This document shows, in pieces, positions 4,417 to 10,048 of a DNA stretch of 37,919 nucleotides. The translations under genes and the position numbers were made by a program. The stretch lies in sequence record MK064562.1, one strand, 5' to 3'. Below the pieces are notes generated by a model. It saw nothing but the letters and a program-made list of their open reading frames with translations. It was not told the DNA's origin and ran no database searches. Numbering within the stretch: position 1 is the first letter of the stretch; each line of letters starts with the position of its first letter.

Positions 4417-5076
4417 ATGAGTAAAATATACATTCTATTTTGGCAAGCTTTTTCCCTACCCATTGCATATATTGTTACTAACGTATATCTTAATATTGGT
4501 AACTATGTTGTCCAGTTGGATAAATTTTTCCACGTTAAATTTTTATTTAATCTCCCTGAAAGTTGGTTTCTAGCTTTAATAATATTTCTTGCCATATTTA
4601 TATTTCCTAACTTCTATGTATTTATATCTCTTCATTTCATGAAGAAAGATTTTATTAATAGAAAAATTCAGCAAGATATACATATAAAGCCTTACGAACA
4701 ATATATAGAAATAAATAACATGAGTTATACTATAAGGGATACTTTAGATAATCAATTAATATGTTTCATTTTAGTTTCCGTACTTTCTTTCATTATAAAT
4801 TATTCTTCCTTAATTCTTCTGTTGTTATATTCTGTTACACTAATTATAATAAGTATGGTGTACGTAGAAGGTTCGTTAATAGTCATAAACCCCTACTTAC
4901 GGTTCAAATATAATATTTTTATCTTGCGAAGTGGTGATAAAACACTTTATATTATTATGGAGAAGGAGAAAGAGTTCGAAAGACCCAGATTTTCCGAATA
5001 TGTAATTGATTGGTATTACGACCATTTTATATTGATCGGGTTTAAAGATATCAGAGATAAGTTTACTTTTATTTAA
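4417..5076 (+). CDS. Multi-pass membrane protein, possibly KwaA-like
   Basis: About 4 hydrophobic segments; VYVEGSLIVINPYLRFKYNIF motif. Confidence 0.7.
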   Translation: MSKIYILFWQAFSLPIAYIVTNVYLNIGNYVVQLDKFFHVKFLFNLPESWFLALIIFLAIFIFPNFYVFISLHFMKKDFINRKIQQDIHIKPYEQYIEINNMSYTIRDTLDNQLICFILVSVLSFIINYSSLILLLLYSVTLIIISMVYVEGSLIVINPYLRFKYNIFILRSGDKTLYIIMEKEKEFERPRFSEYVIDWYYDHFILIGFKDIRDKFTFI

Positions 5077-5643: not shown

Positions 5644-5796
5644 CTATTTAAATATGATCTTCATTTCTATTGGGTCTATATACGGTGTTTTATCTTTAAC
5701 TAACGGTACTAACGCTTTCGGGATCCTAACGTAATATATTGTCTCTTTGCCTACTTTTCTTCTCGAAAGGTTTGTTTTTATCAAACGCTCATCCAT
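5644..5796 (-). CDS. Small AbrB/SpoVT-like DNA-binding protein (50 aa, not in ORF track)
   Basis: Hand translation MDERLIKTNLSRRKVGKETIYYVRIPKALVPLVKDKTPYIDPIEMKIIFK; YYVRIPK swapped-hairpin pattern; fills the operon gap. Confidence 0.65.
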   Translation of the reverse strand: MDERLIKTNLSRRKVGKETIYYVRIPKALVPLVKDKTPYIDPIEMKIIFK

Positions 5797-5818: not shown

Positions 5819-6598
5819 TTAAAAATATATACTACTTTTTTGCATTTCAACAAGTGTCATAATGCTGTCCGTGTCTACCCTATTTTTTACATGTTCACGT
5901 ATTGTTTCCTTTAGCTCATCGTATTCGTTTTTCTTCATTTTTAATGCGTATTCTATTGCCTCATCAAAACTTTTGATGTCAATCGTGTCTAGTACGTACG
6001 TGTTCAGTAACGTGTTTTTGACTACTATGTCACCCGTTACGTAAAAGTGGATTCCCGGCGTGTCTTTGTGTGTTATCGGTATACACGCGTTTGCCATTGC
6101 CTCGTAAAGGTATAAGTCTTCGCTTTGTTTTGACAGGTTTGTATAAATACAAAAATGGTGTGACGCGAATTCTTCTAATCGGTTGTTTTTAGCTTCAATT
6201 ATATTGAAAAGTTTGAAGTACTTGGATTTCCTAAGATATGAAATTCCGTACATGTCAAAATAATAGTTATCAACGATTAACATGAATAATGATTTATGCT
6301 TTTTTTCCTCTATACGGAAAATAGGTGGTGGTAACGTTTCATACACGTTGAAAAACTTGTTGTAACGTTCTGAGGGTGTGATTATCTTTAAGTTGTATAG
6401 ATTAACGGTTTTAATGTCGTATGCGTCGGTAAAGCAATAAATAAAGCGTCTTCTTGTGTCTATTGATGAGAGAAAAACGTCTATTACTTTCCCGCATTCT
6501 GTAAAAACTAGTTTAGCTTTTTCAAGTGTACTATTTGTCCTTACGGGGAAGTATTTAAAAAAGGGGAATTTATCATCTACGTAGATAGTTGGAACGAT
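5819..6598 (-). CDS. Divergent GT-B (GT4-like) glycosyltransferase with non-canonical or mutated start
   Basis: Frame open 6604-5819; KIITPSE and LYEAMANACIPI motifs; no ATG/GTG/TTG before 6346; SD-like GGAGGATGA upstream of ATC at 6598. Confidence 0.6.
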   Translation of the reverse strand: MVPTIYVDDKFPFFKYFPVRTNSTLEKAKLVFTECGKVIDVFLSSIDTRRRFIYCFTDAYDIKTVNLYNLKIITPSERYNKFFNVYETLPPPIFRIEEKKHKSLFMLIVDNYYFDMYGISYLRKSKYFKLFNIIEAKNNRLEEFASHHFCIYTNLSKQSEDLYLYEAMANACIPITHKDTPGIHFYVTGDIVVKNTLLNTYVLDTIDIKSFDEAIEYALKMKKNEYDELKETIREHVKNRVDTDSIMTLVEMQKSSIYF

Positions 6599-8364
6599 AG
6601 TAAATCATCCTCCTTTTCAATTGTTAATGTATATTCTTTGTCCTCTTCTGTGGCTATTTCAACCCTTACTCCTTCTATTCGTACTGGTATGTGCGTTCCC
6701 GGTTTTGCTATTCTGAATATTGTCCTATCAAATATGTAGTTGTCAAGTCCTAGGATTCTGGTCACGTCTTCTAGCAATGTCGGGTTCTCGTGTGCTAGGT
6801 TTAACACGTTTTCGAGGAATGTTAGATATATGCCTTCTCTTTGTATTATTTGTAATAGTGTTACGTAAGGTCTTTCGAAACTATACGTACCGTGTTCATG
6901 AATTTCGAAGTACGCGTGTATGTATTCGTGAAATGTGGCGATCATGTATAATGTTTCTAGTGTGTCTTTCTCAGCCATTCCCAGTTCCGGGGCTTCTATT
7001 TTTGTCATTATCCTGGGTGGGGATAGGAATATATACTGTTTTTCAGCGAATTTTGTTATTCCTAATAAATCGCTCGTTTGGTACGCGTAACTGTCCTTTA
7101 ACACGAATAGGGGTATTTTTTGTAGTTTATAATCTAGTATTGCGTAATCGTTTGTTATCCCGAGGAAAGCTAATACTGTGTTAAATGCCCATAATCCTGC
7201 TAATACTCCTTTCTTTATGTCATCAGGCAGTTCTGCGAACTTGTATGAGTTGTTTAAAAGTATCATTATGTCTCTATTTTGAGAATATTCTTTTGCCGTG
7301 AATGCCTCATATCCTTTCTTTCTAATTCTATTTACAACAGTTTCAAATATGTAATCATATTGTATATTGAATCCGAACCCGTTACCTATCATTATTATTT
7401 CTTTTAACGATCCTACAATGATCGGCTTTACATCAAAGGCTTTAGCTATTGAGATTATTGCGTCTGCAAATACGTCATTCAGCTCTACCATGATGGGGCT
7501 ATAATCACCCGGGAAGTTAAACAAGAACGCGTTCCCCTCTTTTTTCCCGTTTTCTATAATCGCTTCCTTTATTAGTTCTTTGTCTTCATTTGATAATTTG
7601 CCGAGTTGTTCGTATAACGTTGAGTTATATGGATTTACTTTTGTGCGGTATTGGTCTGCGTATACACAACATAAGTTAACGCTAAACGGTAGATCCCACT
7701 TTCCGGAATACATCCCGTTGTGGTATACATTACGTCCTTCTTTCAACACTTGGGTTTTTCCCTTCCACAATAAATCAATGTCAAGTTTTTTCCCTTCCAC
7801 GTAAACGGTGGTTTGTCCTTTTGTTTCAGCTTTTCCCCGTAATACAACAAGTCTACACATGTCATCTACGTCTTTGATTTTTATTGTCCCGTTACAATAC
7901 CCCGCGAACATGTATGCGTGGTTATCAGTTAACACGAGTGCGGTTTTTCCGATTAGTAACATGGTACCCATTGCTTGTTTCAGCCCTACCCCGAACTTTC
8001 CTATTAAACAACACGGAGGTTTTGTTTGAGTTGTCTTTGTCGTGAAACCCAATTCAAAGGCTTCCTCACTTATTGCTCCTTCAGACCTTATTACATAATA
8101 ACCGTTTTCGTAATCCAGTTTTACGTTTCTATATGCGTTCAAGAAGTCAAGCGTTTTTTGTATTTCGTTATCAATCGCGTTCTGTAGGAATTCTCGGATA
8201 ACGAATAACAGTAATTGGTTTTCATCTTGTGATGTATACGTGTAAACTGACTCGGACACAGTCCTAAAATAATGTAATCTGATATCGCTTGATATGAACG
8301 CTTCGTCGAAAGTTAGTTTTATTGGTTGGTTTATGGTGATAGGAGGTATTTTTATGAACTCCAT
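6577..8364 (-). CDS. GHKL (Hsp90/MORC-like) ATPase fused to HExxH zincin-like metallopeptidase
   Basis: IREFLQNAIDN, FELGFTTK, IGKFGVGLK; C-terminal FHEYIHAYFEIHEHGTYSF. Confidence 0.85.
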   Translation of the reverse strand: MEFIKIPPITINQPIKLTFDEAFISSDIRLHYFRTVSESVYTYTSQDENQLLLFVIREFLQNAIDNEIQKTLDFLNAYRNVKLDYENGYYVIRSEGAISEEAFELGFTTKTTQTKPPCCLIGKFGVGLKQAMGTMLLIGKTALVLTDNHAYMFAGYCNGTIKIKDVDDMCRLVVLRGKAETKGQTTVYVEGKKLDIDLLWKGKTQVLKEGRNVYHNGMYSGKWDLPFSVNLCCVYADQYRTKVNPYNSTLYEQLGKLSNEDKELIKEAIIENGKKEGNAFLFNFPGDYSPIMVELNDVFADAIISIAKAFDVKPIIVGSLKEIIMIGNGFGFNIQYDYIFETVVNRIRKKGYEAFTAKEYSQNRDIMILLNNSYKFAELPDDIKKGVLAGLWAFNTVLAFLGITNDYAILDYKLQKIPLFVLKDSYAYQTSDLLGITKFAEKQYIFLSPPRIMTKIEAPELGMAEKDTLETLYMIATFHEYIHAYFEIHEHGTYSFERPYVTLLQIIQREGIYLTFLENVLNLAHENPTLLEDVTRILGLDNYIFDRTIFRIAKPGTHIPVRIEGVRVEIATEEDKEYTLTIEKEDDLLSFQLST

Positions 8365-9296
8365 TTAGTACACCTCATTCCTAATGTATTAAGTCTTTCC
8401 AATTCTCTTATAACAGTTTTTCCGTACTTTAAGCTTGTCACCTCTTCGCAGTACCCTTGTATTAAGTTCAACTCGGCAAGACGTTTAAGTAACGCTTGTA
8501 CAACCTTTGATGCGTTTGACTCATTTATTGCCATTTCAAAGTTTATTTGTGGCACGACAAGCGTGTTAACTTGTGATATGTACATGTCCAGTTCAGGTGG
8601 GTTTGGAAGCGAATATTGAATTAACGCTTGTTGGACAAAGTCCAGTAAATCTTGTTTTTCGGTTGCGGGCGGTGGTATAATTACATTTTCAGTTGTGATT
8701 TTCTTACAGAATAAGTTGGGGTCACTTACAATGTATACCGGTTTTTTAAATATTTGGTATACGCTTTCCGCTCGTGATAATGTTGTGTTTTGTAGTACTA
8801 TTATGTCAGAACAATCCATGATTTTCTTTCTATTTTGATAAAACGCGGGACATTTGTACACGTTTTCAGCTATTTCAACACAAAACGGTTTAAGATTCAG
8901 ACTATCAAGGTATGCTTTCAATTCATCCTTAGTTACGTAGTGGTCTATGTCTATGTTTCTTCCAGTCCAATAATCTTCAACCGTCGGTACTCCGCATACC
9001 TTAGTTGCTAACGGGTTGTAAAATATCTGTGTGTTAAAGTTTACGAAAATTGTTATATTTTTGTAAAACGATACGGTCTTTTTCATCCCGTTCTTGTCGT
9101 AACAGTAATTCTTAAAGCATACCATTTTCACTCCATCCCTTTCGTTATTGGCATAGAGTAATTCGAGTAGTCCTTTTGATGGTTTCATTGAACCCGGTGT
9201 TTCGATTTCGATAACGTAATGCTTGGGGTTTATATTTAAGTTTTCAGTGCATACGGTTAACGCTAGGTTTTTGAAGAATTCATTTTGGAATATCAT
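8352..9296 (-). CDS. Hypothetical Cys-rich protein, coupled to the GHKL gene
   Basis: 314-aa ORF overlapping the GHKL start by 13 nt. Confidence 0.85.
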   Translation of the reverse strand: MIFQNEFFKNLALTVCTENLNINPKHYVIEIETPGSMKPSKGLLELLYANNERDGVKMVCFKNYCYDKNGMKKTVSFYKNITIFVNFNTQIFYNPLATKVCGVPTVEDYWTGRNIDIDHYVTKDELKAYLDSLNLKPFCVEIAENVYKCPAFYQNRKKIMDCSDIIVLQNTTLSRAESVYQIFKKPVYIVSDPNLFCKKITTENVIIPPPATEKQDLLDFVQQALIQYSLPNPPELDMYISQVNTLVVPQINFEMAINESNASKVVQALLKRLAELNLIQGYCEEVTSLKYGKTVIRELERLNTLGMRCTKWSS

Positions 9297-9382
9297 CCTG
9301 TCTCACTTTTCGGGTATCTGAATGTTGTTAGCAGATATCCCCATGTCAAAAATTCTTTTTGCATATCTTTTTTACTACACAT
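9293..9382 (-). CDS. Putative 29-aa leader protein (not in ORF track)
   Basis: MCSKKDMQKEFLTWGYLLTTFRYPKSETG; stop overlaps the next ATG (ATGA). Confidence 0.4.
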   Translation of the reverse strand: MCSKKDMQKEFLTWGYLLTTFRYPKSETG

Positions 9383-9439
9383 AGCTTCACTATATCTCAT
9401 AGGTATATTTATATTGACGTTTTTAATAAAGTTTAATGT

Positions 9440-10048
9440 ATGAGGTTTACGGTTTGCGTCCCGTGCGGATGGCTCGCTAAAAGCGAACCTTTATTCCGTA
9501 TTTTCTCTTTTGTGCAAAGCACAGTAAAACATCAAGTGTACTTTCACATGGCTATATCAAACCGTGTGGATTTGAATAGAAGTACGTGCGTTAAGGTAGC
9601 ACTTGATAGGAACGAGGACTTAATAATGATTGACAGTGATGTTATGCCTTTACAACCCTTTGATGATGTTGTTAACGTATTGAAAGAGGATAAAAAGGGA
9701 GCTGACGTGGTATTGGGTATAATAGCATCTAACATGGGTATACTAATTAGACCGTTTCCGAAAGATTCTTATGTAACCGAGGTGGAATGGGGAAGTCTGG
9801 GTTTCATCTATTTACCTTTAAAAACGTTGAGGAAACTCAAAGTTATAGACTGGTATAAGTATAGTGAGAGTGTACAATACCCCATGTATTTTACATATAC
9901 GCCCAATATGAGTGAAGACGTTGACTTTATCATAAGGATGAAAAAAAGCGGGTTTAAAGTAATTGCGGATAAACGTATTAGGCTTGCACACCAAAAATGG
10001 GCTAACCTTATCGTTGAGAATAACGGTAACATTAATCTAACAATGTGA
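9440..10048 (+). CDS. GT-A (GT2-like) glycosyltransferase, paralog of 29339-29923
   Basis: AISNRVDLNRS, MIDSD (DxD), SEDVDF, C-terminal His. Confidence 0.85.
   Translation: MRFTVCVPCGWLAKSEPLFRIFSFVQSTVKHQVYFHMAISNRVDLNRSTCVKVALDRNEDLIMIDSDVMPLQPFDDVVNVLKEDKKGADVVLGIIASNMGILIRPFPKDSYVTEVEWGSLGFIYLPLKTLRKLKVIDWYKYSESVQYPMYFTYTPNMSEDVDFIIRMKKSGFKVIADKRIRLAHQKWANLIVENNGNINLTM

Follow-up and report, generated by a model that had tools for sequence, protein, structure and literature searches.

The virions of Sulfolobus filamentous virus 1 (SFV1, MH447526) contain two minor proteins, VP1 and VP2, and the GHKL fold of the N-terminal part of VP1 has also been published (PMC6105669). The gene for VP1, SFV1 ORF11, is annotated as 'putative ATPase VP1'. 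The same genes are present in Sulfolobales Beppu filamentous phage 1 (SBFV1, MK064562), to which the window, the whole stretch of 37,919 bp analysed here, corresponds with a 100% match. SFV1 is 99.1% identical to SBFV1 over this region, with protein identities of 99% for VP1 and 100% for VP2. Both viruses belong to the Lipothrixviridae, genus Alphalipothrixvirus, and come from Japanese acidic hot springs. The analysis of this locus centres on VP1, in which the GHKL-like half is followed by a C-terminal half with an HExxH motif. The reading favoured here, to which an even chance is given, is that VP1 is a virion-borne GHKL-type clamp carrying a minimal zincin, probably a metallopeptidase, with VP2 as its partner and, as regulator or helper, a small Cys/Asp protein encoded at the head of the module.

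The presence of both proteins in purified SFV1 virions was demonstrated by liquid chromatography–tandem mass spectrometry, with 68 unique peptides and 80.3% coverage for VP1 (Liu et al. 2018, Nat Commun, PMC6105669) and 36 peptides and 80.6% coverage for VP2 (PMC6105669). In the supplement of that work, HHpred links VP1 to 5ix1 (P=98.2). The SFV1 paper gives no assignment for the C-terminal domain, and does not describe the degeneracy of motif II, the conserved small open reading frame (ORF) or the conservation of the module in two gene orders (PMC6105669). The GHKL half of VP1 is therefore already published, whereas the proposed zincin is a new point with moderate support; the literature searches turned up no metalloprotease, or motif of one, described for lipothrixvirus virions or proteins.

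The nearest architecture to that of VP1 is found in the Tiamat/sacsin clade of GHL ATPases, in which an N-terminal Hsp90/sacsin-like GHL ATPase is followed by linker folds and often, downstream, by a Wss1-like metalloprotease-like fold without HExxH. Tiamat itself is a large cellular defence protein with DUF3684/TPR folds and a PD-(D/E)xK nuclease (bioRxiv 10.64898/2026.09.30.754977). In contrast, VP1 is a virion protein of 595 residues with an intact HExxH motif. It is not a Tiamat, since Pfam and PADLOC searches revealed no DUF3684, no nuclease and no PADLOC match.

Regarding the C-terminal half, the SprT-like, Spartan and Wss1 proteins (PF10263) share with VP1 an HExxH motif on a helix, a short loop, an H-G pair and an aromatic/acidic pair. 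However, VP1 has neither a Zn-ribbon nor a basic DNA-binding region, its domain is acidic and its scores stay below threshold. At the motif level, the zincin part resembles archaeal minigluzincins more closely than SprT/Spartan. In projannalysin of Methanocaldococcus jannaschii (4jix), HELIH-x6-NHG-xx-FE aligns with HExxH-x7-HG-xxx-FE of VP1 over about 50 residues, and both proteins are archaeal and have minimal scaffolds. Projannalysin differs in being a stand-alone chain of 112 residues with no fusion; the E-value is only 0.08, and the protein is not recovered by Foldseek. As VP1 fails every family threshold, it is not filed here as a member of a zincin family.

Finally, the N-terminal half has counterparts in phrog_6077 proteins, such as a hypothetical protein of Edwardsiella phage KF-1, with which it has in common REFLQNAID, a GxFGxGxK box, YxNG and a non-Asp motif II. 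These proteins differ from VP1 in that they stand alone, comprise about 370–390 residues without an HExxH domain, and are encoded by tailed phages beside RNA ligase-type genes. Another example is a stand-alone 388-residue GHKL-like protein on an IMG/VR contig (L018:4953-6119; phrog_6077, E 1e-78), which carries REFLQNAID, SNSG at motif II and IYVNG, and whose gene is flanked by an RNA ligase-like gene (phrog_548) on one side and a phrog_7313 gene on the other.

The zincin-like C-terminal half of VP1

The strongest argument for the zincin half is conservation, since its motif residues are among the few invariant columns of the family. The motif consists of H479-E-YI-H483, followed by H491-G492 and then by F496-E497. 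Residues H479, E480, H483, H491 and G492 are invariant in the nine relatives that have the domain, at identities down to 16–19%. Only 19 positions are invariant in the whole VP1 family, including R57, E58, D65, G106, G122, G125, G127 and K129 in the N-terminal half together with these five. When the C-terminal 221 residues of eight homologues (19–35% identity) are compared, H-E-H-H-G accounts for five of the seven invariant columns.

The pattern HExxH-x6-15-HG-x2-3-[FW][ED] is kept in nine relatives, including the remote protein P0015, and two remote proteins with a GHKL part (P0013 and P0016) share HExxH...[FW][ED]. HExxH is invariant in the 11 aligned sequences. Furthermore, one divergent relative (P0010, contig L009) retains HExxH..HG despite the loss of GHKL motifs I and III, which counts for the zincin half.

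The AlphaFold2 (AF2) model of residues 375–595, based on eight homologues, reached a mean predicted local distance difference test score (pLDDT) of 86.2 and a predicted TM-score (pTM) of 0.86, and agrees with an independent BFVD model (TM 0.93). It contains strands at 419–421, 435–439 and 442–447, a helix at 465–485 with HEYIH at its C-terminal end, the H491-G492 loop and helices at 494–508 and 512–526, and then a small beta subdomain with strands at 536–538, 558–564, 567–570, 578–585 and 588–594. Minimal zincins combine a sheet with an edge strand and an active-site helix, and carry the third ligand where the following helix begins. The order of elements in the model is compatible with such a scaffold.

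Database searches returned matches below significance. In a PDB profile search with the 11-sequence alignment, 12 of the 13 sub-threshold matches were zincins (E 0.08–1.5), the best being projannalysin 4jix, followed by astacin, an M48 peptidase, snake-venom metalloproteinases and deuterolysin. A control profile of VP2 matched an unrelated assortment, and PDB sequence-profile searches with two queries (A1 and A5) gave nothing relevant. When 11 C-terminal pieces were compared with Pfam, SprT-like was the top family for three remote relatives (best E 0.0095; 12–15 bits against a cut-off of 25.6) and the only one matched by more than one piece, Peptidase_M78 and Tub being matched by one each. Foldseek against BFVD placed SprT-like proteins, after the self-match, at ranks 6, 7, 9, 17 and 30, a 'Metalloprotease' at rank 10 and an IrrE-like protein at rank 18, all of them sub-significant (E 0.9–4.4, probability at most 0.23). 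The HExxH motif by itself accounts for part of these weak matches, which are thus not independent proof of the fold. The zincin around HEYIH proposed in the initial annotation, which was made from the sequence alone, therefore stands as far as the invariant motif, the compatible scaffold and the predominance of zincins among the weak matches are concerned, but it is not backed by a significant fold or family match.

The isoelectric point (pI) is 5.2 for VP1 and 4.9 for its zincin part. A DNA-related role, the removal of proteins from DNA, had also been suggested; the acidity of VP1 does not suggest DNA binding, and the idea is not supported by the results obtained here. A transmembrane anchor at residues 386–404 was considered and rejected, as the hydropathy of 1.69 is confined to SBFV1, the homologues are not hydrophobic there and the model shows a buried helix. 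No conserved transmembrane segment is present in VP1.

The proposal extends the architecture of a GHL ATPase joined to a Wss1/SprT-like fold to viruses, here with an intact catalytic motif. As a possible consequence, virus particles may carry a regulated protease.

The GHKL half and the question of activity

The assignment of the N-terminal half to the GHKL superfamily is supported. The full-length AF2 model has a mean pLDDT of 62, with a good N-terminal part. Foldseek relates it to the topoisomerase II ATPase of African swine fever virus (E 8e-4, probability 0.99), and further to the ATPase domains of T6 topoisomerase II, Grp94, HtpG, Hsp90 and GyrB, in line with the HHpred result published for SFV1. 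A match to phrog_6077 was obtained at E 4.5e-8, and the remote matches of the VP1 profile search are HATPase_c_3 proteins. The best curated family match is weak, the NCBIfam sacsin ATP-binding-like domain in three homologues (E 0.004–0.06); beyond such sacsin-domain matches, PADLOC, Pfam and NCBIfam gave no usable family for VP1 or VP2. Judging from these similarities, the N-terminal half belongs to a virus-borne sacsin/HATPase_c_3-like GHKL subgroup of the phrog_6077 type.

Motif I reads E58-FLQ-N62-A-I-D65 (ExxxNAxD), so that the residues earlier proposed for mutation as E57 and N61 were numbered one position too low. Wherever a relative retains the motif, R57, E58 and D65 are unchanged. The lid corresponds to F103-EL-G106-F-T108-T-K110, and motif III to G122-KF-G125-V-G127-L-K129, of which the three Gly residues and K129 are invariant in the family. 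Downstream, Y214, N216, G217 and P226 are invariant in the block 205–245, and its YxNG element is also present in phage phrog_6077 proteins and in P0013. Two Cys-Cys pairs occur in VP1, at residues 118–119 in the lid region (8008-8013, minus strand) and at residues 232–233 in the LPFSVN-x-CC block (7666-7671, minus strand). Of the more distant homologues, the majority retain C119 and C232, which may connect the lid with the conserved block through a disulfide or a metal.

Some features weigh against a catalytically active VP1, and the first of them concerns motif II (DxGxG), whose degeneracy was overlooked in the initial annotation. In VP1 it reads S94-E-G96-A-I98. Among the seven closer relatives in which the stretch is present, the Asp column holds Ser in five and Asn in two (P0008 and P0009), whereas the residue is unclear in P0015. 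The second Gly is also absent across most of the family; HATPase_c_3 relatives (P0011–P0013) carry D-x-G-x-G in the aligned columns. To our knowledge, no GHKL enzyme has been characterised in which this Asp does not contact the adenine. Its family-wide loss puts canonical ATP binding in doubt, and this binding may have been lost. In the 480-residue P0010 (L009:1906-3348), moreover, deletions have removed motif I, of which only the Asp aligned to D65 is left, and the region of the lid and motif III, although the YxNG block and HExxH...HG are kept and VP2 and the small ORF still precede the gene. ATP gating of VP1, as had been proposed initially, is plausible by analogy with GHKL proteins; it is not supported by the results obtained here and is weakened by both the motif II change and the motif-losing lineage. 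The phrog_6077-type subgroup without the motif II Asp, which extends across viruses, also raises the question of what, if anything, such domains bind.

The same caution applies to the zincin half. Foldseek of the C-terminal model against the PDB found nothing better than E 0.2, the top matches being baculovirus cap proteins and Hsp60 at that value or worse and deuterolysin appearing at E 2.3. In Pfam, neither VP1 nor its close homologues, including the C-terminal pieces of three of them, had a match at E up to 10. Comparison by hhalign with enterobacterial SprT recovered the motif only, over 10–25 columns with a probability of 2–5%, a weak negative because the SprT profile was built from relatives of E. 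coli SprT and is of low diversity (effective number of sequences, Neff, 1.7). The Wss1-like fold of Tiamat is inactive, and the 'HATPase' of Synechococcus phage Ssp-JY42 (L019:2155-3348), with its GHKL boxes in an unusual order, has a degenerate EEHLH where HExxH aligns. In addition, the major capsid proteins of SFV1 were recovered from virions with 99–100% coverage (PMC6105669), which leaves no sign of proteolytic trimming in maturation; a role of VP1 as maturation protease for these proteins was rejected on this ground.

Most of these points would fit an account in which both halves of VP1 are pseudoenzymes and VP1, together with VP2, has a purely structural function in the terminal neck and mop of the particle, serving in capping or adsorption, with the His and Glu residues holding a structural ion or the fold. 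The status of VP1 and VP2 as stoichiometrically minor virion proteins with high mass spectrometry coverage agrees with it as well. However, the few residues that remain invariant at 16–35% identity are of catalytic type (E58, the GxxGxG box and H-E-H-H-G), and the Glu of HExxH is seldom preserved where the role is purely structural. This account is considered rather unlikely.

The VP1–VP2 module and its possible role

VP1, VP2 and the small ORF form an operon, as read from their overlapping genes: the small ORF and VP2 share 4 nt (ATGA), and VP2 and VP1 share 13 nt. The VP1 and VP2 sequence features listed initially are all present in the ORF translations and at the junctions. The 29-residue leader described at the head of the operon does exist as an ORF coupled by overlap, but it really comprises 35 residues, the shorter version being counted from the internal Met7 (9382).

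A VP2 homologue adjoins the VP1 homologue in all seven SFV1-like lineages with informative contigs, and a homologue of the small ORF heads the module in every one of them. The order is small ORF–VP2–VP1 in four lineages (SBFV1, SBFV2, L004 and L009) and small ORF–VP1–VP2 in three (L006, L007 and L011). Since the linkage of VP1 and VP2 outlasts this swap of gene order, it is good evidence for a functional pair, and the partnership with the 314-residue protein claimed from the sequence is borne out by this comparison of neighbourhoods. The linkage of the two partners is strongly supported, and VP2 is likely to be the binding partner of VP1.

VP2 is near neutral and contains ten Cys residues. All ten are invariant among three close homologues, and three of them (C139, C149 and C309) in the full set of seven. 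No relative of VP2 was found in Pfam, PHROG, PADLOC or the PDB, and a word-indexed protein search returned only VP2 itself. The small ORF carries a [RK]-C-x3-D-hydrophobic motif that is invariant across the seven lineages, and its product is not among the virion proteins listed for SFV1 (PMC6105669).

Among SFV1-like viruses, the module seems to belong to the core. A word-indexed search with VP1 found three proteins, the near-identical SFV1 VP1 and two relatives at 38–40% identity, and when 1.84 billion representatives were searched exhaustively with a profile, nine proteins at E below 1e-30 and the remote tenth P0015 were recovered. The statement in the initial annotation that these genes are not part of the core lipothrixvirus toolkit holds for the other deposited lipothrixvirus genomes: in a tblastn search of deposited phage and virus genomes, relatives of VP1 were confined to SFV1, SBFV1 and SBFV2, with no other lipothrixvirus matched. 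A locus search with a three-sequence alignment retrieved SFV1, SBFV2 and one IMG/VR phage GHKL protein only, and a pattern scan covering 185,579 species of bacteria and archaea, with one genome for each, detected no VP1 relative. Two GHKL-like proteins from outside the lipothrixviruses have a comparable layout: P0013 (L015, 815 residues), with two GHKL repeats and HEFVH, and P0016 (L012–L014, 818 residues), with HELAHAACHG, both have an HExxH...[F][E] segment at their end. Together with the Synechococcus phage protein, they suggest a wider, partly degenerate GHKL and zincin-like architecture (phrog_8203) beyond the lipothrixviruses.

The initial annotation regarded the genes as a conflict-system operon that might counter host defence, and a host-directed role for VP1 is in part also the view of Liu et al. 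(PMC6105669). VP1 would then be an effector delivered by the virion for host takeover or counter-defence, its zincin cleaving host chromatin, defence or envelope-biogenesis proteins and its GHKL half serving as a MORC/Hsp90-like client or DNA clamp. Packaging in the virion would permit action ahead of viral gene expression, GHKL/GHL ATPases recur in conflict systems (Tiamat joining a GHL ATPase to a Wss1-like fold), and, in phages, the genes related to the GHKL half have neighbours that function in nucleic-acid metabolism, such as an RNA ligase. However, VP1 and VP2 match no PADLOC defence model and show no defence-family similarity, and the acidic VP1 has no evident DNA-binding surface. VP1 is also strictly linked to its structural partner near the capsid genes, SFV1_VP4/SFV1_VP5 genes being seen on the contigs long enough to show them (L006, L007 and L011). 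Finally, it occurs in every SFV1-like lineage seen, instead of being patchy and variable like typical anti-defence genes. The conflict-system framing overlooks that VP1 and VP2 are known virion components, abundant and covered to about 80% by mass spectrometry, and that their genes belong to the structural module. An effector role is considered distinctly unlikely.

The favoured reading is that of a virion-borne clamp–protease complex of VP1 with VP2. The ends of SFV1 particles are tapered, with a 'neck' and mop-like fibres, and some necks are elongated up to 700 nm. The GHKL halves of VP1 would dimerise and act as a conformational switch, perhaps responsive to nucleotide and possibly in an atypical manner, that governs access to the zincin site. 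The VP1–VP2 complex would be carried in the particle, probably in the tapered neck and mop structures at its ends. A zinc site with His ligands would probably fail in the hot acid outside the cell; VP1 would therefore act in the neutral, ATP- and Zn-containing cytoplasm, either in the assembly of the terminal structures or in opening and uncoating the nucleoprotein after entry.

A more specific version makes the module a latent uncoating protease, with VP1 and its adaptor VP2 packaged inactive at the virion ends and opened on entry. The Cys/Asp pair of the small protein, as a cysteine-switch-like inhibitor in trans, or the closed GHKL dimer would cap the zinc. In the neutral, nucleotide-containing cytoplasm the clamp would open, and the zincin would strip the capsid-protein sheath from the A-form DNA, termini first. 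This would explain the elongated necks on some SFV1 particles. If true, it would also give Adnaviria a first proposed mechanism of enzymatic uncoating, but the probability of this version is judged to be low. For filamentous archaeal viruses, the construction of the terminal structures, entry into cells and release of the tightly sheathed A-form DNA are poorly understood, and an invariant zincin-type site in a virion protein with a GHKL clamp and two obligate partners offers a concrete target for mutation (E480, H479, H483 and H491).

The HExxH...H site could instead belong to a metal-dependent hydrolase acting on glycans, lipids or nucleotides, as some zincin-fold relatives have non-peptidase roles. 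The module lies between glycosyltransferase genes in every long contig, with a glycosyltransferase gene after the VP1/VP2 pair in most lineages. Moreover, the SFV1 virion is enveloped and its VP3, VP4 and VP5 are glycosylated. The weak similarities of the domain, however, point to peptidase families and none to a glycosidase or esterase, which makes a hydrolase of this kind very improbable.

Feature positions and neighbouring genes

The positions of the module, its promoter and the parts of VP1 are collected in Table 1.

Table 1. Features of the VP1–VP2 locus of SBFV1 (positions in the window)
Feature	Positions	Strand	Basis or remark
Probable archaeal promoter, A/T-rich TATA-like box TTTATTAAAAA	9420..9430	-	Read from sequence
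Small ORF, 35 aa, head of module, SBFV1 gp14 / SFV1 ORF13-35	9293..9400	-	Annotated hypothetical
VP2, 314 aa, Cys-rich minor virion protein, VP1 partner, SFV1 ORF12-314	8352..9296	-	
VP1, 595 aa, GHKL-like N-terminal half and zincin-like C-terminal half, SBFV1 gp12 / SFV1 ORF11-595	6577..8364	-	
VP1 aa 1-45, conserved N-terminal beta 'strap' ahead of the Bergerat fold, F3 invariant	8230..8364	-	AF2 strands 4-11, 17-29
VP1 aa 46-200, Bergerat/GHKL core	7765..8229	-	Foldseek, NCBIfam, PHROG, alignment; motifs I-III at 7978..8193
VP1 aa 205-245, most conserved block, VY-x-NG...LPFSVN-x-C	7630..7752	-	pLDDT about 26
VP1 aa 256-400, alpha/beta middle domain, possibly a transducer-like linker	7165..7599	-	AF2 pLDDT 63-92; no family match
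VP1 aa 401-535, zincin-like domain: three strands, helix with HEYIH, H491-G492 loop, two helices	6760..7164	-	AF2
Motif HEYIHAYFEIHEHGTYSFE, aa 479-497, putative Zn ligands and catalytic Glu	6874..6930	-	Translation, invariance
VP1 aa 536-595, small C-terminal beta subdomain	6580..6759	-	AF2 pLDDT above 90
Glycosyltransferase gene, directly downstream of VP1	5819..6598	-	Annotated 175 aa from GTG 6346; open frame reaches about 6586-6598

The TATA-like box TTTATTAAAAA lies 20–30 nt upstream of the ATG at 9400, inside a divergent intergenic region of 39 bp. A scan for bacterial-type promoters and terminators was uninformative, as expected for an archaeal virus, with promoters no better than those in shuffled sequence.

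The glycosyltransferase gene noted initially after VP1 is present, and its frame even overlaps the 3´ end of VP1. The annotation of 175 residues from a GTG is the same in SFV1 and SBFV1. However, tblastn with the orthologues of SBFV2 (253 residues) and L009 (259 residues) gives 45% identity over about 250 residues with no stop, and the frame continues about 80 codons beyond the annotated start to about 6586; a codon walk shows it to be open back to a TGA at 6605-6607. The upstream stretch 6347-6598 contains no ATG, GTG or TTG in this frame, only ATC codons, whereas in SBFV2 and L009 the gene begins with ATG, which is part of an ATGA shared with the stop of VP1. A programmed −1 frameshift from VP1 into the glycosyltransferase was rejected, as there is no slippery heptamer.

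For the 50-residue ORF at 5644..5796, the earlier label AbrB-like was not backed by searches of Pfam or of PDB sequences, and it was rejected. Farther away, SBFV1 has a hydrophobic ORF of 219 residues (ORF8-219a, 4417-5076, plus strand) between the homologues of SFV1 ORF07 and ORF08. It is absent at that place in the SFV1 annotation and roughly accounts for the 608-bp difference in genome length.

In one SFV1-like metagenomic virus, a gene with a KwaA domain is located just upstream of the small ORF/VP1 module; the 167-residue membrane protein with this Pfam match (Kiwa defence system) is encoded at L007:7257-7760 and L008:1058-1561.

On the other side of the module, and divergent from it, an ORF of 202 residues (9440-10048, plus strand) has a DSD (DxD-like) motif and weak matches to phrog_1574 (E 1.5e-5) and to a glycosyltransferase PHROG (E 0.13). 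Together with the adjacent ORF of 193 residues it is syntenic in SBFV2, and by its sequence it may encode a further glycosyltransferase in the cluster around VP1 and VP2.

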